A DNA stretch of 64,000 nt from Phallusia mammillata. Taxonomy: Eukaryota. Below the pieces are notes generated by a model. That model was not told the DNA's origin and made no database searches. It saw only the letters and a list, made by a program, of their open reading frames with translations. The position numbers and the translations under genes were made by a program. The stretch spans positions 20,212,001 to 20,276,000 of the forward strand of contig OZ281495.1 in NCBI GenBank assembly GCA_965637545.1. Reading direction: 5' to 3'. Every line of letters begins with the position of its first letter. Positions within the stretch are counted from its first letter, which is position 1. Positions 39,395 through 62,714 of the stretch are shown piece after piece.

Positions 39395-48637
<9,243 letters not shown>

Positions 48638-49628
48638 GCTTTGTGTAATGTTTGAATTGGGGCAGAGTTTTAGAAACTTTAGTGATTAAAGCACCAATAA
48701 CATAGGTCCTATGAATTGATTTAAATTAAACCCTTGTGCACAGAAATCATTGTGTTACTTCATATAAAACAGTACTTTATTTGAAGGACATGTGGGCATG
48801 TGTGTGAACATACAATAACAGACATTTTCTGAACGTTACAAATTATTATTTTTGGCTGTTTTCCGTTTCTTAAGTTGTCTAAACTGGTCACCTAACTTAT
48901 ATTGTTAATACCCTTTTTATTAAACTTTGTAAAGCAGTCAGATTTTGAGTAATACACAAAACAACACTCAAATTTATAACAGTGTCAATACATATCACAT
49001 ATTTTTGAAACTCTTGTTATGTAGGTAGCTGGTATCAATGACACTGTAGCTCTGTTTTACAATGCTAAAATTGGGGCACTAGTGAATTTGAGGAAAGCAA
49101 TATGTTAAAAGTAATTTAAAAGTTCAGAGTTTTTGCCAAAACCAAATAAAACTTCTGAGAAAACCAACCCACATATAAAAGACACATTTTGCATAGGGTT
49201 CAGTTCAAGTGCCAAGACATGGACAATATGATTCTGCACTGAAAGCCCAGTGTAATGTGCTAACTGCTAATAAACATGTTGCTTTCCAAATACAATTTTT
49301 ATTGTATCAAAGAGAAAGGTAAATGCGTAAAAACACACAATGCAAATATTCCCAAAAGTTAACGGCTTACATAATCGTGAACTAAACAATAACGTGTACA
49401 AACTGTCATTTTTTATCTACAAACTATCTCAAACGTAGCGTCATACATTTAACATGACTAAAACTAAACAAAATCTAGCCTTCTCATATAAACTTATTAA
49501 CAAACAATTTCCTTATTATAGCAGTTAGGGATTGTGTATATTCTTGTTTTTATTCATGTCTTAATATTCTATCTTAAGCCAGGGGCCCAAGCGACGACAG
49601 GCTTAACCACATCCGAATTGGCACTTAC

Positions 49629-51003: not shown

Positions 51004-53362
51004 CTATATTTCTTCTTCAAACCGTTCATCAATATTTACAGTATTGTCAATGTAACTGCTTCTTGGACGCTTCGTTGGTCGCCAAGTGTGATCAGGCGGA
51101 ATTTGAGAACGGCGACTGAATGCTTGCCAGTAATCCGCGTGATTGTTCATCCAACTTTTCCTCGGTGTGCGGCGACGTCGAGAGATATCATCTCTTCTTT
51201 GTTGCCGACTTCTCGAAGTTTCCTTGTTCCTTCGAGAAGATACGGCGTCAAGGGATATTTTTTCATTGGTGATATTGGGCTTCGATTTTCTGCATGATGG
51301 ACATTTTAGATTTTGTTTTGCAGCCCTTTTGAAGGAAGGCGAAAGAGAAGCCATAAGGCAAAATGGCAGTGTTCCGGCAAACATGTACAGAAACATAAAT
51401 ATTACAGCAAAATCAGTCGTTGTAAATGAAACTACGTGAAGAATGTCATAAGATGGAACACCCGACGCATTATACCACTGAAGGGCAGAGTAAGGCATTT
51501 CTAAATTGAGAACGCCTGTTGGGTCTCCGAAAACATCAACAGCAATTAACGAGTAGACAGGCAACATAAGAAGATACACCACCGAGTAAGTACACAAGGT
51601 AGCTTTTGCTTCCGTAATTTCTCCGAAAAACGACACAGCGCTGTCGTACGGTACAGACAAAGGAGTGGTAGCGAGGTCCTCCACTTTAACAGCGGACGCC
51701 ATAGTATCACTTCGTTTGATTGACGGATACTTAAGCCAATCAGGTGGAAGAGGCATTCGGGTATCAAGGGATTTGTTAGCGCCAGCATTTTGATGCATCT
51801 GAATGCTATCGGTTATGATGGCGCTGAGGTCAGCTTCCTGGCAGTTGGACATAACTTGCTGGGTGTGTTCTTGCTTGTGAGAATACGACACGTTTTCCTT
51901 GCAAGAGACAGTGTTTACTCGACCCTGTGAAACTCTCAAGCTCGAATTCCTAGCCAGCCTGTCGACGGTCTTCACGTCCGAGGTAGGTTTGCTTTCCTGT
52001 CGGGATTGAAAGTAAACCAGTGCCTGGGCTTGTTCGTAGCTGTTTAGTCGCATTGCGTTGTTTTTCGTCTTCAGCAAAGCTATTGAAGTGGCAACAATGC
52101 AAATCACGAGGAAAACTGCAGGCACAAACAGCATCAGTATGTATATTATAGTCATTGTTCGAATCCGGTTGGCTGGGATTGTAAAAAAGCTGGACAAAGG
52201 GTGAAACTCGTCAACCCTATTTTGGAGATGATCTCCATAAAGTAGGAAACGTTCTTGGCCGTAGATAACACTAACGACCGCCAAAACAAAGCTTGCTGCC
52301 CACGATAAAAGCAAGTACAGCAACAGAGGCAAACGGGAGAGACAACTGATTGAATATCTCAGCTCCTTCACCGAATTTCTATTCATTTTCATCTTGGTTT
52401 TAAGCTCTATTATCGGATTTGAAACCTTGCACAAATACATATGGGGCTTAATCCGAATCAATGCCATCCACCTTTCGCAAACAGCGCCAATGCTTGAATA
52501 CAAACTCAATGCCACAATGAAGTGAAACACTGCGTTCGACACATGTTTGGCCGTTGAGAGACGGTAACTGCTTGCTGGGGTTTCGTTAAACGCCATCATC
52601 TCATAAGCTGTTATCATCAACGTTGGAAGAAGGAAGCAGGCCGCCACCAGACTTGCCATCGCGAACGAGCAGAGAAACATCGTCTGGGCCTAAAACAAAA
52701 TCAAAACTTGTTTTAAACATGTTTAGGGGTTAAAAATAAACATAAACAACGAAACGTGTACCAAAATATTCACGATTAGATTAAGCGTTTTTAAATACAG
52801 TAGTTAATGTTATCTCACCATCGTCTAAGTTGTCTTACTTTCGCAATCAACGAGTGTCAAAAATTATGAGCAGTTTCACGTCTAAGATTTTATTATGTTT
52901 GGTATTTGGATTTTCTAAAGTTGCTAATATTGTTGGACACAACAGCCTCTTCAATAAACCAAAAGAGCTAGAGTTTATAACGATCATAAGCGTCGTGACC
53001 ACAAAGAACTATTTTCGGCCTTGGTTTACCCAAATGGATTTCTTGTAAGTCATCATTCGCTGTGCAGATTCCTCGTCTTCTTTGGTCAACGACCTTTCTG
53101 CTCTTTTGTGAATGGCCACAAAAATTGTCAACATGTTGAAAACGGCGCAGCAAATTAACAAAACGCCAGCAAATGCAATTACTACATTCGCAGCAAGTTG
53201 ACACGAAGGGTCAAGCGTTTCCCAAACTGTTTTATACTCCGGAGCACCAGAGGTTTCGTACGTTGCTGCCGTGGTGACGGTGGAATTCGCGCCATCTTCA
53301 AGTGATTTGAGCCACTCGTCTTTGAACTGGGTACAAAACGGGATAAGATACGGTCCTTTCAT
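51004..53362 (-). CDS. Divergent class A (rhodopsin-like) orphan 7TM receptor, 2 exons, ~672 aa
   Basis: Exon 1 (53030-53362: ATG, N-x-S/T sequon, TM1 ending FNMLTIFV) splices in phase 0 to exon 2 (51004-52689). Seven hydrophobic segments are present, with ERW at the DRY position, W in TM4, P in TM5 and TM6, and a helix-8-like SPSFKRAAK. The exon 1 donor is less certain than exon 2. Confidence 0.78.
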
Positions 53363-55086
53363 CTTGCGACAGTTTTATTTATGTTTCCGCCTAATAGGTC
53401 AGCATATGATTCTACTCATTGAAACAACGTCTGAAATCAGTAGTGCAGAAGTATAAGTTTGAAAACGTAGTCCTGTAAACATTTGCTTTGATTTTTACTT
53501 TTTCAACGGCCACAATAAGTTTAACATCTTTGCATTATTATAGTGTATTTTGCCCTAAAAAAACTCGCTTTAACGTGCTTTTTTTATTTTACTTTCACTT
53601 TCTTCAGGTTGTGGTTGTTTTGGGTAAATCATAAGATATTTCCCTTTAGTGTATTGCACTGGTCTAGTCGACGACAGAAATCAAAAACTTTTCAAGCGGT
53701 TATCACAAACAAGTGTCACCAAGATGTTATAATGCAAAAAGTTTACCCTAGGCCTAGGATAACATAAAGTTACACTTTCGGCATTTAAACTCTAAACGCA
53801 GTTTTTATTCCTTTCATACCATCTCATTTTCAATTCTTGTTTCCTAAGCACTGTAAAACAATAACTCTTTGCTCACAATGACACGCGCAGAATGTATTCG
53901 AAGTCTCTTGTATAGTTTTTCGCAAAACTGGCGTGGTGTAATCCGAAACACGACATTTCTTATACTCACGCATTTTTATTAGCGGCTTGTGCAGGTCACG
54001 CGCGACTCGCAGAGCAATTATGCAAACACAGAAACGATTATTGCAGGAATCGGTTAACGTCCGGAAATGACACATTCTTGGCAAATGTTTTGTCGAGAGA
54101 ACAATCATCGCTTAACAACTCAATTTGAACTAAACATTAATAAATACATGCATTTTAAAACGCTTGTGTAAATTAGAAGAATCAATCTTAGTTTTGTCAT
54201 TTTTGGAGAATTTAAAATATACCACCCAAATATCAAACGAGGGCGATCTGATCTGCGAGTATCCAATACGTATGTCACGTAAACATTAAACTTTCATGTT
54301 AATAAGCTACCAACATTTTTACGCTTAAATGCTGATTTATTATTTAAATACATATAAACGTTTAACCTTTTCGAACTAATACAAACAATTAAGCCTGTCG
54401 GAGCTAAAAAAGTTTACATCGCTCGATACCCACATGAGCGTTTGTATTTAAGTCAATTTTTTTCATTGCTGAAACATTGGTCCCTTCGTATTTCAACATA
54501 CCATTAAAAAAATTTTAAGGTCCCAGTTTAGATTTAAATGCTAAATTCTGTACTTGAATCAGTAAAAACTACGTCTGCAAAAACACTAGTTGGTATTAAA
54601 CTTGTTCGGCCTTAAAGTTTCAAAAATCTTTTTGTACGTTATCCGGGGGGCGTTTTGAGTAATGGCAGCCTAAAACTAAACTTATTTGCTATTGTTATAT
54701 TTGCTGTTGGTTCGCAGCAACTCAATTTAGAACGGCAGTAAATAGAAAATTCAGCTGCTCGTTGGAAGACTAATATCATGCAACGCTTAGTTAACCCGCC
54801 ATTGGATTTAGGCCTGTTTGTTTTTTCCGATGTGATAGAAATAGTTGCTTTGGCTTCATTTGGATATGTTTGTAATAATAGTGGCGTCTAAGTCAATCGC
54901 TTTTGTTAAATATAAAACAATTAGTAGTATCCAGAATTTTTCTTAAATGTTTATGAAAACAAATGTGTTTCTAAAATGTATGAAACTGGTGCTTACTATT
55001 ACGACCTACGCTATTCCCGTCCTAGAGAAACTAATCTAAATCAAACCGTTTGGATTAGTTTTATTTATTCGCACTAGCACATCGTT

Positions 55087-57910
55087 TTACATGCGATATT
55101 GACATGCCAACATTCTATCAGCTGCGATCGCAGCAAGGTACCGATAATCGGTAAATAAATGCTGCGCATGGTAGTGAGGCCACTGTTGGAAATGATTTGT
55201 TTGCAACTGCTGTTCACCTCGTCCAGTTGCGCCTTGAATAAAGCCAATGTTTCCTTGTAACAACCTGTGCTTCAGGTGTGCAGATACAACGTTGTTAACA
55301 GCAGGAAACTGCGAAGGCACGAAAGATTTGGTTTTTGACAAGTTTAAAATTTGATCCACGCCATGGCTTAAAGGCGTCGTGCTTTTGTTTGTTAAATCAA
55401 GAGGTTGTGTTCCTCCGCTCTTTGGCGTTGTTGGTCCATGTGGGCGTGTTAGTGACGCCCCATTTATTGCTTCCGCAGCAAGTGCCAAAGTTGTGAGATT
55501 GCATCGCATTGGTGGTGCAGGCATCGTCTGTTCTCGCTCCAACGAGGATACCACTTCCTTCGGGATAGGAGAGGCCAATTTCTTTTCTTGTTTTGTGGTC
55601 GGCTCATACGGAATCACGATGTCGTGTTTAACTAGGGCGTGCTTCCTACGGTTTGATTCACGCCTAAAACGGCGCTTGCAACCAGGGCATGGGAAAATAG
55701 CCTTTAGGCGAACGCTTGGTGATGGTATCGACCTCTCTTCCTGAGAAACAATGGCCAGTGGGCTGGGACGGTTTGCAGCTTGCAGATTTTCACGTGCTGG
55801 AACAGCATGAGGAATGTCATTGAATGCAGGAACAGGCGAAACTGACAACTTTCTTCGTTTGCCTTCAGGGTTGGCCATTGTATCACTACACGAAGCTGAA
55901 AAATACGATATTGCTAGTTAATCATCTGTTAAGTTTAACACCCACAAAGTAAACCAAAGCTATTGCTACAATAAACATAAATGAAAGTACGTAACTGCTA
56001 TCTAACACCTTACGTGTCTGGAAAAACTACGTAACACATCAAAACCTACTTTTCACGTTCAAATTTCATTCAAAACCTAGTCTAGCTTGCCGTTACTAAT
56101 TATGCTTTTCTAAATCAGCAAAACGAAGCGAATAAAACGGATTTAAGCTTTTGTACGAAATATTCTTTTAGGCGTTCATGTGCTGTTTTTATACACTCAC
56201 GTTGAGTAACGAACGAAGCCGAAACTATTTTAATATACTTATATCTACATCGCAATTCCACACACTGCTTGAACAGAACTGTGCCCATTCAAAGTTTTGC
56301 TTTTTGGTTTTATACTGCGCGCAACAGCTGGAAGCAACAAAAAAAAGCGTTCCTGGCTCATTCCAGACAAAACAAAGCACTCGTTATCAACGCGCGAACG
56401 CGGGCGATACGTCCCCGCAAATTCCTTTGTTCGAGTCGGGCGGCGCTGAATGGTGCAGCTTCTGTGCAGCGGAAGGTGCGAAGGGCAAACACAATTGAGC
56501 ACACGTCGCCAGGCTACGGGCTATAATCCCTGCCACATAGCTCGGTAACAATAACTTTTCGCAATTTCACATGAAAGCCGAAAGACTTCCCTCGTCTGTT
56601 AAGCTCGCTGGCAGATTTTCGTTTATGTTTGTCTTAGCTTTGGCTGGCAGATTTGAATAGGATGGTCTTGTGTGTATATATTCACATATTTTTGCATGGT
56701 TCGGATATATACTTCGTGGAAAAAATATTTTTCAGATACTACCGCGCAATAACATTCGCACTATGATCGAGGACATAGATAAGTATTGTCACTATATGTT
56801 GGTTTCAATAAAAAAGGCATTAAAGTATATTAGGTATAGATGGTCATCCTACCCCTTCAATAATATTTTGATGTGCGTTTCTAAATAAAAGTTTAACGCA
56901 TACTACATAAGTATTTTTTAAAACCTTACAAAACAGTCAAATTCCTCCGTATGTTGCATTGTTAGAAAAATGTCGGGTTTTCACTTCAAACATTTAATAA
57001 CAAGATTGTACACCAGCAACTGAAAGAATTTAAATAGCAAAATCGATTTACTGAGGAAAAATGATCACCTTTAGGTTTATGCCATCTTTTGTGTGATGCG
57101 AGATTAGCAGGACAACCGAAGTTCTTTCCGCATTCCGAGCATTCGTAACGGACATTCACAATTCGTGGGCATCGATGCTGTGCTAGTTCTAAAGCATTGC
57201 TGTGTATTTTGGCGCAAAGTCGACACATAAAATGTTCCGAGCCTGTACATAAAAAAGCGCCAGTTAAATACGTTATATAACACGCACTGCGAACATAGAC
57301 TTATTACCTTCCTTTGATGTTTCAGTCACTTCTTCGACTTTGTGGTTTAAAGTCTGAGTTTTTGTTACATTTCCGCTTTTGAAGTTTTCATGCGGCGAAG
57401 CAATTTCACCCGCCGGCAAAATTTTTATACCTGAAGAAACAAATCAACGGTGTTATCTATAACTGCCATTTATTCTCACAAAAAGCAGTTGGGAGTTGGT
57501 TGTATCGGTTAAAACGACCGAAGAAACGAACCTAAGACGGGTGACGAGTTTTCGTCCTCAAGTTGTCGATTCGCGTATCTACGTTTTTTCGCAAAATTCT
57601 TGCCACTGGTGACAGGCTTATCTTCATCCACTCTTGGTAAGTTGGCACCATTTCGCTGCTTAACACCTAAGCAGGTTGACTGACTTCCATCATCACAAGT
57701 TAAGTTCTGATCCACCAGGTGGGTTCTATCCTTGCTCTTATATTGAGTTGAGATCTTTAAATCTTTGGCTAAAGTGAATTCATCGTTGTTTACCGAAAAG
57801 TTGTTGGGCCACTCTTCTGTGTTCTCAACAAGACCTTCTGCAGCAGCGCATCGTGGACTGTTGCTTCTGTATCCAGAATCAGGTGAACCAGCTTCTACGA
57901 GCTCAACCAT
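55087..57910 (-). CDS. INSM: INSM (insulinoma-associated / IA-1 / nerfin / EGL-46 family) zinc-finger transcription factor, 4 exons, ~494 aa
   Basis: Exons 57532-57910, 57308-57430, 57069-57242 and 55087-55895 join in phase. The protein contains [13 protein letters not shown] (compare INSM1 EDEVTTSPVLGLKI), the diagnostic ZF1-ZF2 pair [43 protein letters not shown], and a third finger [17 protein letters not shown]. Confidence 0.92.
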
Positions 57911-58068
57911 TTTGTCTTTCCTGGCCAAGGTAGGCGGATATGAAAAAAATATGAGTGCATCTGTTCTTATGTACTTGTCGTGAGCAAAACGAAAAAAGAA
58001 ACATATTTTATTGCGCGTGGCCCGTGTGTGTGGCGCTAGAGAGCGAATCAACCGGGGCACACTACGGC

Positions 58069-58075: not shown

Positions 58076-58637
58076 ACTAGATTGTCATACTTTGCCCTTA
58101 CGCAAACAGCGCGAGTTGAGAGCGAAAACAAATGGCGGAATTTGTCGGTTACTCGACGGAGACTGCGCGAACCGACTATAATTGAGTTCCGAAGCTTATT
58201 ATCTTTACGCCTGCCATCTGCTCACTCTCTGCTGTCAAGCCGAGCAGAAATCACGATACAAGACGAACGAAGATCCACCTTCTTGCGCCACGCGGTCGTA
58301 AACATGCATATTGTTTGTCACGAGGAATGATGGCTATTTGTGTCACGTATAGTTTGTTGTTTTTGCACAGAGTCACCTGCAAAATAATGGTAATTACCAT
58401 AACAGCGCGCTAAACATAAAACTTTATCTCGGATAAAAAAAATTGTCTGATGAATGATTTGCTTAACGTCTTAACTTTTGGAACTGTTGGTATTAATAGT
58501 AGAAATGCAAACACAGTCGGCGTTTTTATTTGCCTAAAACTCGCGCGTTTTTAGAGACGCTTCGCAAGTGTGGTGTCATCTTTCCGATCGTGCAACGTCA
58601 AACAAGTGCGTATAAAAGAAGCTTACTCGAATTTCGG

Positions 58638-58680: not shown

Positions 58681-60516
58681 ACAACGTCAACCGCTAAAAG
58701 TTTATTAAGGCGGGAAAACTAAAACGACCTTTACGCAAGGACCCATATTTTATGTTGCAAAAATTTCTTGTATTATTTGCTTTAGGCAACATGAGTTTCG
58801 GAATGACAGTTTGTTGTTGGACGGGTTTATGTAGGGGAGTTTAAGTCATGTTAAACAAGCACGCACACGAAAGTGAAAGTTGTTCGTTAAATTCTGCTTT
58901 TTTTCTCTTCGGAATTGAAGGTTTTGTGTCAAAATTACAATCAAGGTCAAACCAAACTAATGTAATATTACTAGAAATGATAAGGTCACATTAAAGATTT
59001 TATCATTTGCGTGGACATGAGATGCATTTGCCCATATTTTTTTCCGTGTTAATCTTTAACGTGATTTCTGACACCAACACGTAGTTTTGTGTCTGCATGT
59101 TCGGTTAACACCACGCAAAGCAGATGTCGATACACGCAATAAACCATTCGTGCTCCCAATAGCGTGGTTCGATGTGCCCAACATTAAAACAGCATTTTTA
59201 CAACCAAAAACGAACATTGCAATATTGGGGTCAAATTTACATAATTTTTTAACGAATCATGTTGTGAGGTAACTTAGGGACAGATAAAATGCAGAATTTT
59301 TTCTTTGTAACGAAACAATATGTTGACCCGGCAAAACTGCATAAACTCTGTTACTGGAAGAAGAGTTTTAATTCTTCAGAGCTCTCTTAAGTTAAATTCT
59401 TTAACATTTATCAACGAGGCATTCTAACGGGACAATACTTATTTTTTCCTTTTTTTATATCATGCACAGACCTTAACTAATCAGATATGTTACTGTTCAG
59501 AACGTATACGTTAAGAATTCACAAATTAATTATCAATGCGTTAGGCGAGGCTACATTATGCATTTAAGAAATACTTGGACGCCTTTGTGTCAATTGAGAT
59601 GTCATTCATTCGCCACGCGTCAGTCGTGCATGAATTTAAAGTCAGTTAATGCTGCGGTTTTAAACGAGGCAGAAGGCACGCGCGCTTATACTTCTGATCA
59701 AATCACCGTCACGGACCAAAGTCGAGCCTGGTGTGAAGCAAGGCACGCGATCCACAAGCCAGAATATGATCAAAACTAGCCTTATTCAGTATATTTTCTC
59801 GATGCGACAGATGGTCTCTTCCCCGCGGGAATGTTTACCGGCCTAAAGCACGGCCCCGCAGACGCCGCCACAGCGCACGGATTGGCCCCAACGAGCAAAC
59901 ACAATCTGTTGAAGCGGCTGCCTTGCCACTCTCACATAATCTCCCTTAGTTTTTGTTTTAAGAAATCCATTCGGGCGAGAGGCTTCGGATTTTGGTAAAC
60001 GGTTTTTATCCCGGATATGTGGCGTGATTTGCGCACACACACCATATCGTGCTGATAAGATGTCAAGTGTCATACCGTTGCATAATTATTGACTTGTGGT
60101 TCTATTTACGTAAAATAATACAAACACTTATAGACGTTCATCGGTGTATTTAACATTAAAGCAACATGGTTAAGTTCTTTTTTGAAACGGGAGAAGTGTA
60201 TGTTAAGGAATATTGCTTTAGAGAGTGAAAGTGAAACAAATTTTATCGTTCAAGATATCTATTGTCATTTAATAAAAAATGTATATAAAAAAAAAAAATG
60301 ACTACTTTCACATTATTACTTGCCAAATCATCAAGAAATGAAAAAAAAAATATTTGTTGGGCTTTTGTATGGGTTGCATAGTGCGATGACAAAAATGCCA
60401 ACTTACGACCGTTTCAAGTTTTTAGCAAATTTGTATTTAAATTCATTGACTTTTTATTAAAATTTTATTAAAAGTTTAGGTTTGGGGTTTAGACTAAAAA
60501 TATATAACACTGTAGT

Positions 60517-62714
60517 CAGTGGCGGCTCGTGCCTAAAATTTGTGGGGGTGCTGCCCCCACAAATTTTAGCCTCTACTGAACATATATAAGTTGGCAATAT
60601 ATTGAAAAGCTACATTTCTAGTTTTCTAGCCACTTGTTTTGTGCAAGTAATACAAATCTTAATTAGCAACTCCATTGTGACGTAATTTTTGTTACGCAAT
60701 AATGTACACGAGTGTAAACAGCAGACGGCATCATTTGTGTATTTTGTTTACTTGCACAGCGACGGGCCAAACACAATAACGTTCAGTAATTATGTGAAAA
60801 ACAAAAACACACGTGGCACAGCTTCGAAACGAAGCGGTTGTAAATACGGTAAAACACAACAGAAATATAGAAAAAAAAGTAATAGAAAAAAAAATAGATA
60901 TAGATGAGTCGAAAAAGGTCGAAGTATTTCAGTTCGACAACAAAAATTTTCATGTTTCATTTAAGTAAATTTAGTCACAGTCAGCGTTTTCAACATATTC
61001 TATGACACTTCACAGATTATTGTCACACAAAAAAACTAGCCATACAGCTTTTTATTGGTATCATAACTAACAAATTTAACAACCACATTACATTGGTTTC
61101 AGAACTTGTTCATTTAAACATCTTTCTTGAATTTTTGTGTGCAGACTATTGATTGTATTTTAGTTTCTTAGCTGCTATAATTGCTGCTTGCTGGCAAATA
61201 GCTTAACATTCCTTTTTAAGTGCAAAACGCCTTCAAGCTTTAAAATTTACAACATTCTCACTTAAATTTAAACCATATTATTAAATCTTGTGGTTCCTTT
61301 TTCCAACCAAAATGAATCATGAAGTTATAGTTTGGGCATGATAATTGATAGCTTCTTCCTTAATCCCAAATGATAACTAAGAAACTGTTTTTCTATTTAG
61401 TACTAGCACTGCAAGTGCAAGTCTTTTGGAAATATTGGTGTTCCTCAGAAAAATTGGCATCTTTTTCAGTGTTAAAAAGAACTGTTTTGCCTTTGAAAGA
61501 ATCATGGAAACAGCAAAAAGGATTTTTCATCCTAGTAATTTAACTTGTCAAAACATCATCTCTAGATTAATTATTTTCAAAGTAATCATGAACATCAGAT
61601 CTACAGAAACATTTTCATTTGAGTAACTAGCTTTTCTTTGTCAACAATAGGATGTGCTTGGTGTCACTACTATCTTGTCTGTAGAATGTTCATTCTTAAG
61701 AAACACTTCCTGTGAAGCAATTTAGCAGCTACTGTTCAGACAAACAGTACATGTCCATTATATCAATACACATGACTGCAATTGGTTGCAAATACTGTCA
61801 ACATGGTGTGTTAAGAAAGCCACACTTTAAATTGTCTTCACTCTTTTTTTGTCTTCATTTCAAAATTCCTGTTGCTAGCAGTTGTTTGTTCTGCATTTGA
61901 TATTGCCTGAATTTCAGTGAGGCATTTAACTTCACAGTCACAAATTTAATTTTTTTTTGGTAGCATTAGGAACTAAAACTGAGTATTTCTTGTTGTTGCT
62001 TATTCCTGCATGACATTGGAGTAGAAGATGTTTTGTCCCATACTTTCAAAAATCTTTTTAATTCAGTTATTTATTATAAAGGTTAATTGTGACTTTTAAA
62101 GGTGTTAGATGACCTTTTTTTTCTTTTTCAAGGTGTTAGATACACTTATTTAATTCAATGATAACTGTAAAAACTAAAACCCACTTGCAGTCATCTTAAA
62201 AAGTCACGACTAACAGTCAAACAATAAATTTAATGATAGCAAAATAATTATTTAACTACACTCACTGTCGAACTTAAAAACACAGCACACGGGTTTGGCT
62301 TTGGAGCTCACTGACGCGAAGCAGACAACACAACCAGCGCTACGTCACGGGAGGGGCTGCGCGAGCCACAGCCCCCTCTCGCCTATTTCGCCCGGCATGT
62401 AGCTTTTCCAAGTGCGCATGCGCACAACTGAAAACGTCATGAAACGTCACGAAACTGGAGCTGCAGCTCCGCCATAGATAACTTATTATTATTATTATTA
62501 TTATTTTAAATTTCTTTTAAATAATACAATTTTTTTATTAATTTTATTTTAATAAAAGGCCGATTAATGCCATAAAAGTTATTCTTAGTATACACTGATC
62601 AAACATAAAAACTATATGTAAAGATTGTTTTGTGTAACAACTTGGAATAGGAATGTCAAGTAAAAATACTGGGGGTGCTGCAGCTCCGCAGCCCCCTCGC
62701 ACGAGCCGCCCCTG
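60517..62714. mobile_element. 2.2-kb non-autonomous hAT element (Tip100-like termini) upstream of INSM
   Basis: TIRs CAGTGGCGGCTCGTG / CACGAGCCGCCCCTG (14/15 match). Exact 8-bp TSD ACTGTAGT at 60509-60516 and 62715-62722. GGGGGTGCTGC subterminal motifs. No intact ORF inside. Confidence 0.9.
62483..62505. repeat. (TTA)n microsatellite inside the Tip100-like element
   Basis: About 7-8 TTA units. Confidence 0.9.

Follow-up and report, generated by a model that had tools for sequence, protein, structure and literature searches.

An INSM orthologue of the ascidian Phallusia mammillata that lacks the SNAG motif and carries a candidate CtBP-type motif in its C-terminal tail

Background

INSM1, a tumour marker, is one of the core regulators of neuroendocrine differentiation. 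Its repression is believed to depend on SNAG and LSD1, and LSD1-inhibitor therapy in small-cell lung cancer builds on this dependence. Here we describe the INSM gene of the ascidian Phallusia mammillata, which lies on the minus strand at positions 55087-57910 of a 64,000-nucleotide (nt) stretch of contig OZ281495.1 (assembly GCA_965637545.1, positions 20,212,001 to 20,276,000); this whole stretch is called the window below. The gene has four exons and encodes a protein of 494 amino acids (aa) that has three zinc fingers (ZF1 to ZF3), lacks the SNAG motif, and contains in its tail an invariant PLDL island that fits a CtBP-type short linear motif.

The closest described systems are found in the same family. 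The INSM orthologues of Drosophila and C. elegans have three fingers and no SNAG, and those of Nematostella and mammals have SNAG (PMC9020782). CtBP and Rpd3 both come down with Drosophila Nerfin-1 in co-immunoprecipitation, and repression by Nerfin-1 is trichostatin A-sensitive (PMC6430605). In INSM1, ZF1 is the TEAD-binding finger, and ZF2 and ZF3 bind DNA weakly (PMC11880201). In addition, an in situ screen of P. mammillata recorded expression of 'Insm' in mesenchyme and in the central nervous system (CNS), and reported no protein architecture (PMC9238270).

The Phallusia protein is like Drosophila Nerfin-1 and C. elegans EGL-46 in having three fingers and no SNAG (PMC9020782), and its ZF1 corresponds to the TEAD/Scalloped-binding finger of Nerfin-1 (PMC11880201, PMC6430605). 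Like vertebrate INSM1/INSM2, it has an SPVLG motif, a ZF1-ZF2 module and a homologous ZF3, and its gene is expressed in the CNS (PMC9238270), although unlike the vertebrate genes it is also reported in mesenchyme. Vertebrate INSM1 has an MPRGFLVKR SNAG motif that binds LSD1-CoREST, five fingers and no introns, whereas the ascidian gene has three introns and encodes neither SNAG nor ZF4-5.

A parallel exists outside the family. Drosophila Snail, unlike vertebrate Snail, is reported to lack SNAG and to use PxDLS-type CtBP motifs (Nibu et al. 1998). In both cases, a zinc-finger repressor of the SNAG family has no SNAG in one lineage and has PxDLS-type CtBP motifs instead. The CtBP dependence of Drosophila Snail has, however, reportedly been shown by genetics, whereas for Phallusia INSM we infer CtBP use from a conserved motif, and the two proteins belong to different zinc-finger families.

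Family identity and orthology

We compared the Phallusia gene with those of Ciona, Clavelina and a fourth ascidian (locus L003 on an ENA contig; protein P0002), using five ascidian sequences for the tail, and scored a census of 80 INSM family relatives for SNAG and for PLDL[STR]. The first-pass annotation of the window, made from the letters alone, had called the gene an INSM factor; named relatives, zinc fingers and gene order all agree with this, and the gene is the ascidian orthologue of INSM1/Nerfin-1/EGL-46. The fingers are as follows.

57169-57225, minus strand: ZF1, of the unusual CCHC type C-x2-C-x12-H-x-C found in the INSM family
57079-57141, minus strand: ZF2, directly after ZF1, with the family signature of the CPANLASH[KR]RWHKP type
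55624-55695, minus strand: ZF3, of the family type C-x2-C-K-[KR]-F-R-R

Among named relatives, INSM and egl-46 proteins come closest. ZF1-ZF2 are 62% identical to those of salamander (Pleurodeles) INSM1 and are matched in one stretch by PDB entry 8jpy (INSM1 ZF1-ZF2; E=1.5e-20), and ZF3 is 44% identical to INSM1 ZF3 over 32 residues and matches the Pfam family zf-C2H2 (E=4e-4). Before ZF1 lies an acidic-SPV[LS]G motif, whose S, P and V are invariant when it is aligned with mollusc DEDKSSPVSG and the orthologues from ascidians. The targeting module that is kept in Phallusia INSM therefore consists of SPVLG, ZF1 (CCHC), ZF2 and ZF3. No C2H2 pattern that could be ZF4 or ZF5 was found beyond ZF3, and the protein is not of the vertebrate five-finger type.

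The gene order in Ciona is RALGAPA (upstream, on the same strand), INSM, an unnamed gene and an AKT-type kinase gene, and Clavelina matches this order as far as the unnamed gene (RALGAPA, INSM, unnamed gene). In the window, the unnamed gene lies at about 51280-52560 and an AKT-type PH-kinase gene at about 47390-48655 on the minus strand, in the same order as in Ciona. The unnamed gene encodes 634 aa in Ciona and belongs to no Pfam family. No RALGAPA exons were found in the window when the upstream flanks of the Ciona and Clavelina genes were compared with it by tblastx, and a word search with the ascidian profile yielded no additional tunicate orthologues.

Absence of the SNAG motif

Phallusia INSM does not begin with the N-terminal MP[RK]xFLV[KR] of SNAG repressors. 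It had been noted earlier that no MPRxFLV is present upstream on the minus strand, and scans with DNA and protein patterns give the same result: across all frames of the window, neither a scan that tolerated one mismatch nor one with a loosened protein pattern finds a peptide of the MPRxFLV type. Likewise, no SNAG-like peptide was found in the loci of Ciona, Clavelina and the fourth ascidian, including the 10 kb upstream of the gene in Ciona and Clavelina, where the scans cover the whole spacer to RALGAPA, and 7.5 kb upstream in the fourth ascidian.

What the N-terminus has kept is a motif that lies further inside the SNAG-bearing proteins.

57869-57889, minus strand: GSPDSGY motif, conserved in ascidian and in SNAG-bearing mollusc INSM

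This motif stands 5-8 residues past the start in ascidians and about 45 residues past MPRGFLVKR in molluscs, and insect proteins lack it. All four ascidian proteins start M-x(5-8)-[GE]SP[DE]SGY. Since the Phallusia open reading frame (ORF) begins right before GSPDSGY, SNAG and about 40 residues following it are missing. In-frame stops lie upstream of the homologous ATG at -24 in Clavelina, -15 in Ciona and -21 in the fourth ascidian; in Clavelina there is no AG between the stop and the ATG, so that no acceptor can bypass the stop. In Phallusia, contigs assembled from public RNA runs (X1, to 57941; X5, to 57932) are collinear with the genome through the sole acceptor-like site, at 57921, and a joint into an upstream exon was found in none of the RNA runs. 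From these results we conclude that SNAG has truly been lost and that the loss is common to at least four ascidian genera.

As for how the loss came about, the SNAG-bearing five-finger INSM of Pecten maximus (L004, 6001-7452) is a single uninterrupted ORF, and the three ascidian introns have the same positions in Ciona, Clavelina and Phallusia. Because the Pecten gene and vertebrate INSM1 are intronless, the ascidian introns are probably tunicate gains, and the ascidian 5' coding end was probably truncated without the loss of a separate exon. The idea that SNAG had been lost as a separate 5' exon, with an old intron acceptor turning into a trans-splice site, was rejected in this form on the grounds of the same Pecten and vertebrate gene structures.

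The sequence upstream of the start codon also contains a conserved element.

58178-58221, minus strand: conserved non-coding sequence some 300 nt before the ATG, containing CAGATGG, AGATAA and CAATTA

This block has 84% identity over 45 nt to L003:7207-7250, which has the same relative position in the fourth ascidian, and it fits a proximal control region and not an intron. We regard it as a candidate proximal enhancer or promoter. Its CAGATGG E-box recalls the proneural basic helix-loop-helix control of vertebrate Insm1. A second short conserved block is located at 59804-59847.

The ascidian N-terminal motif reads SPDSGYRS. The beta-TrCP phosphodegron has the consensus DSGxxS, an example being DSGKGS of Snail, and by this resemblance SPDSGYRS may be a degradation signal common to SNAG-bearing and SNAG-less INSM proteins (P0003, P0005, P0007, P0008, P0013).

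The C-terminal tail

In Phallusia, the place of ZF4-5 is taken by a disordered tail with an invariant PLDL[T/S/R]. Ascidians share little sequence in the tail after ZF3; in the AlphaFold2 (AF2) model, the predicted local distance difference test (pLDDT) score exceeds 90 only over ZF3 and is below 55 in the tail, where disorder is predicted. The conserved islands of the tail are listed below.

55390-55404, minus strand: PLDLT, a CtBP-type motif of the PxDLS class, with P, L, D and L invariant in the five ascidian sequences
55345-55365, minus strand: HGVDQIL, a conserved island about 10 residues past PLDL, of the form H-x-V-x-x-[IL] with H and V invariant; it overlaps ILNLS
55090-55098, minus strand: YRM at the C-terminus, which Phallusia, Ciona and Clavelina share unchanged

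Textbook CtBP ligands such as E1A (PLDLS) and KLF3 (PVDLT) have a core of the PLDL[S/T] kind. The five ascidian motifs are PLDLT, PLDLR, PLDLR, PLDLS and PLDLT, with a basic residue within two positions; together with the next residues they read PLDLTNK in Phallusia and PLDLRVR, PLDLSKK and PLDLTVK in its relatives. PLDLT agrees with the CtBP-ligand core P-[LVI]-D-L-[ST], is conserved, and lies in predicted disorder (pLDDT at most about 54 around the motif). PLDL[STR] appeared in only 2 of 3000 composition-preserving shuffles of the Phallusia protein. Judged by sequence, the PLDL island fits a CtBP-type short linear motif.

The first-pass annotation had pointed out PLDLT together with a second motif, ILNLS (55336-55350). 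The alignment of orthologues upholds the former, its PLDL core being invariant across the five sequences. ILNLS was rejected as a second CtBP-like motif since it is unconserved: the corresponding residues are KITNK in Ciona, RLVNN in Clavelina and EIMKP in P0002.

The distribution of the two kinds of motif across the family is also informative. In the census, none of the 11 proteins with a SNAG pattern (from molluscs, birds, hagfish, tick and others) contains PLDL[STR], and SNAG and PLDL[S/T/R] never occur together in one protein among the 80 relatives. Most SNAG-less insect proteins have PLDL[S/R/T] near the N-terminus (residues 15-143, mostly 24-74), whereas the ascidian motif is at residues 381-419, in the C-terminal tail; this difference in position points to independent origins. 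Unlike the ascidian protein, the bird, salamander and hagfish INSM proteins sampled have no PLDL[STR], and the nematode proteins of the census have neither SNAG nor PLDL. The exclusivity of SNAG and PLDL across the family also suggests a place for CtBP binding on insect Nerfin-1; a literature search found no text in which Nerfin-1 and PLDLS are named together.

The combination of a missing SNAG and a CtBP-type motif is thus already known from insects. The earlier proposal of a lineage-specific swap of co-repressors is accordingly retained in part: the SNAG loss and the invariant PLDL stand, and the uniqueness does not, given the published precedent in insects and worms (PMC9020782, PMC6430605). 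In the literature searched, 13 papers name both Insm and Ciona, and in none of them does either word occur in the title or abstract.

Some further family members deserve mention. Beetle 'egl-46-like' proteins (P0018, P0024, P0061, P0063-P0065) start with MPRVQY or MPRVPY, so that the MPR of SNAG is retained and its FLV is not, and have PLDLS at residues 51-67; such proteins may represent an intermediate between the SNAG and the CtBP-motif states. Two nematode proteins, P0078 (MSTGDFMARR) and P0079 (MGDFLVRS), have degenerate SNAG-like starts. At the other end of the protein, several insect three-finger relatives end in ...HQ[SN]YR or ...NYSR, and five-finger forms end in ...RP[NA]C (the comparison drew on P0003-P0005, P0006, P0019, P0021, P0068 and P0072). 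The YRM-like ending may be a C-terminal peptide common to three-finger forms.

Gene model and transcripts

The gene model is as follows.

57532-57910, minus strand: coding part of exon 1, 126 codons and 1 nt, with the ATG at 57910; it ends in the family motif EDENSSPVL(G)
57308-57430, minus strand: exon 2, 41 codons (IKILPAGE...), with RNA joints 57428/57530 and 57241/57307
57069-57242, minus strand: exon 3, which carries ZF1 and ZF2
55087-55895, minus strand: exon 4, with a basic KRRK stretch, ZF3 and the disordered tail; stop codon at 55087-55089, joint 55895/57069 in X5 and X17
55060-55069, minus strand: AATAAA poly(A) signals that overlap one another, followed after 12-18 nt by the ends of three RNA contigs (55046-55049)

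All three introns are in phase 1, and all three junctions (55895/57069, 57241/57307 and 57428/57530) are present as joints in contigs of public RNA runs; a single 1504-nt contig, X17, crosses all of them and spans the four exons. Exon 1 is represented by contigs at 57530-57891 (X17), 57706-57932 (X5) and 57759-57941 (X1). The three fingers and three introns that had been predicted are therefore confirmed by sequence and RNA joints, every feature named earlier is present, and the coordinates given for the gene, PLDLT and the Ala-Ala (AA) helix discussed below are exact. The exon-4 product shares 99% identity with the public P. mammillata protein A0A6F9DF71 (P0001, 'Insulinoma-associated protein 1b'), a 322-aa model that takes an internal Met of exon 3 as its start and so lacks exons 1 and 2. 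A Pfam search of exon 1 found no family, and neither did an Rfam search of 54-64 kb.

An upstream ORF of 33 codons (MFLFSF...) at 57903-58004 on the minus strand overlaps the Insm ATG out of frame if the 5' untranslated region (UTR) reaches at least 58004, and one low-depth X5 contig (57942-58106) suggests a 5' UTR that reaches this position or beyond. Further upstream, 60517-60800 has a strong RNA-contig signal in three runs, with flanks that vary by run and joints that have inserted letters, and the loose contig ends at 60517 match nothing in the window. This region looks like a transcribed repeat and not like an exon of Insm or RALGAPA.

A candidate short transcript with a spliced leader

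In addition to the four-exon mRNA, one RNA contig suggests a shorter form that begins at exon 4. The features concerned are as follows.

55896-55897, minus strand: AG acceptor that serves exon 4 both in cis, for intron 3, and in spliced-leader (SL) trans-splicing
55898-56272, minus strand: candidate outron of the exon-4 transcript, the sole RNA-covered part of intron 3
56308-56314, minus strand: TATAAAA, candidate internal promoter element 419 nt upstream of the exon-4 acceptor
55861-55878, minus strand: MANPEG, first ATG after the exon-4 acceptor, in frame, opening a 263-aa ORF with ZF3 and the tail

An X1 contig covering 55370-55897 continues into 23 letters, the reverse complement of which is GAGTACGGG followed by ATTCTATTTGAATA and then by the AG at 55897-55896. 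We take GAGTACGGG to match the 3' end of SMART-type template-switch oligos; with such a tail before it, the leader sits at the 5' end of the cDNA. The 16-nt ascidian spliced leader is ATTCTATTTGAATAAG (PMC1488885 Table 1). The contig thus has ATTCTATTTGAATAAG on an AG acceptor at a cDNA 5' end, as is the case for ascidian trans-spliced mRNAs (PMC1488885), and no copy of the leader occurs anywhere in the window. Unlike in the usual ascidian SL mRNAs, the acceptor is also the internal cis acceptor of a longer mRNA, and the leader would define a 5'-truncated isoform.

Within intron 3, RNA contigs lie at 55916-56246 (X1) and 56052-56272 (X5), all of them within 380 nt of exon 4, and in four runs the stretch 56279-57066 has no contig at all. 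In run X9, exon 4 alone is covered. The TATAAAA at 56308-56314 precedes the end of the longest intronic contig by 36-42 nt, and a second TATAAAA is found at 56187-56193. In Phallusia (+18), Ciona (+3) and Clavelina (+3), the ATG that comes first after the acceptor keeps the reading frame. We lean slightly towards taking the spliced-leader exon-4 RNA as a real, separate transcript, and are less confident that it yields a functional protein. A promoter inside intron 3 would probably drive the transcript, its outron being replaced by the leader. Translated from its first ATG, the transcript would yield 263 aa that comprise ZF3 and the PLDL tail and lack the TEAD finger.

Weighing the alternatives

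The overall reading that we favour, with moderate confidence, is that of a SNAG-less, three-finger INSM orthologue that has a CtBP-type tail motif, would dock on TEAD and repress through CtBP, probably acquired this arrangement independently, and is also expressed as a short SL transcript. In molecular terms, Phallusia INSM would dock on TEAD via ZF1 and bind DNA weakly via ZF2-3, as INSM1 and Nerfin-1 do, and repression would proceed via CtBP/HDAC recruited by PLDLT instead of via LSD1-CoREST recruited by SNAG. Such an arrangement would mirror what Drosophila Nerfin-1 appears to use, and the change would have occurred independently in the tunicate lineage, making the ascidian protein a chordate counterpart of Nerfin-1.

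Several observations weigh against parts of this reading, and they are given here with the alternatives that they favour. A general one concerns sampling: the tunicates compared belong to Phlebobranchia and Aplousobranchia only, not to stolidobranchs, salps or larvaceans, and amphioxus is likewise not among the genomes sampled.

The alternative that survives best, doubtful as we consider it, is that the leader on exon 4 is noise, reflecting occasional trans-splicing of the full-length pre-mRNA and not a separate promoter or product. The leader is seen in a single contig from one run of one study, and at the same acceptor the other runs (X5, X17) show the cis join; moreover, contig depth cannot rank the isoforms. 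The first ATG past the acceptor does not keep the frame in the fourth ascidian, and blastn found no conservation of the 3' part of intron 3 with other ascidians. Occasional trans-splicing does not readily account for the uneven coverage of intron 3, where the 380 nt next to exon 4 have RNA and the other 790 nt have none in the four runs, or for the restriction of X9 to exon 4. The position of the TATAAAA relative to the longest intronic contig and the first ATG, which is in frame in three genera and located at +3 in Ciona as well as in Clavelina, likewise argue for a separate short transcript.

Somewhat less probable, and in our view unlikely, is the alternative that the PLDL island is not a CtBP site but serves another partner or a structural role, the protein acting via another route such as HDAC or TEAD only. 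The general CtBP pattern is permissive, about 10% of the shuffles of one protein matching it by chance, and the fifth position of the island varies (T/S/R), being R in Ciona. Besides, the conservation extends to H-x-V-x-x-[IL] about 10 residues on, outside the CtBP consensus, and the nematode orthologues of the census show that an INSM protein can have neither SNAG nor PLDL. These points are set against the match of the PLDL[S/T] core to the textbook CtBP ligands, the location of the motif within a predicted disordered region, and the presence of the same core in insect orthologues, of which Drosophila Nerfin-1 co-immunoprecipitates CtBP. On this evidence, we retain the assignment of the island as a CtBP-type motif.

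A third alternative is that the tail also recruits Sin3-HDAC, through the PAH2 domain of Sin3, by means of a Mad1-type Sin3-interaction helix.

55465-55497, minus strand: amphipathic stretch of 11 residues in exon 4, resembling a Sin3-interaction domain (SID)

The first-pass annotation had described this stretch as a Sin3-type motif, and this holds for a loose pattern (hydrophobic-x-x-hydrophobic-hydrophobic-x-A-A-x-x-hydrophobic), which the Phallusia stretch matches, as do 30 of 3000 shuffles (1%) and no non-ascidian relative of the census. It fails for the strict consensus. A strict SID has bulky hydrophobic residues at positions 1, 4, 5 and 11, A-A at 7-8, and acidic residues at 12 and 15 (the Mad1 consensus is reportedly that of Brubaker 2000 and Swanson 2004). 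The strict pattern has no match in the Phallusia protein: position 5 of the stretch is Ala and not a bulky hydrophobe, and N and S stand where the consensus has its two acidic residues after the motif. In the alignment of orthologues, the AA helix is conserved in Ciona and Phallusia only; the Ciona version, LSTLALAAE[ST]L, is near-identical, whereas that of Clavelina, IATPVQAAEVL, is degenerate with a helix-breaking Pro at the fourth position, and the fourth ascidian (P0002) has no counterpart. A helix is predicted by AF2 at exon-4 residues 133-143, but with pLDDT below 50. A Sin3 contribution is possible, though poorly supported, and we consider a Mad1-type helix here quite improbable.

The weakest alternative, that an upstream SNAG-coding exon lies beyond the window or was missed by the annotations and that the protein is a normal SNAG repressor, could draw on the 177 nt of open frame that precede the ATG in Phallusia, on an acceptor-like ccttggccag/G 10 nt before this ATG, on RNA contigs that stop at 57941 (58106 in one low-depth contig) without reaching the 5' end of the full-length mRNA, and on an intergenic space that may exceed 6 kb, there being no RALGAPA exons inside the window; yet it is highly improbable in view of the in-frame stops 15-24 nt before the homologous ATG in three ascidians, the lack of a SNAG-like peptide in their upstream sequences, the contigs that read through the candidate acceptor, and the start Met that four species keep 5-8 residues before GSPDSGY. 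Note that, because the full-length 5' end is not captured, the Phallusia start rests on homology and on the absence of an upstream joint, and for this reason a slight residual doubt attaches to the absence of SNAG.

Implications

A more far-reaching proposal, which we put forward tentatively and regard as doubtful, is that INSM exchanged SNAG for PxDLS at least twice independently, at the N-terminus in insects and at the C-terminus in tunicates, the two motifs being mutually exclusive and interchangeable, and that an intronic promoter adds an SL-capped isoform consisting of ZF3 and the CtBP tail. If this is true, the short isoform could be a natural antagonist of the long one or a TEAD-independent repressor, and it may explain the expression in mesenchyme. 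If the short SL isoform is real, it would also be an example of trans-splicing that creates an N-terminally truncated isoform of a transcription factor.

Tunicates are the closest living relatives of vertebrates. An exchange of SNAG for a CtBP-type motif in this lineage with the TEAD finger kept, if true, would mean that the co-repressor module of INSM is replaceable while its targeting module is fixed, and the ascidian INSM would be a natural experiment on the specific contribution of SNAG.

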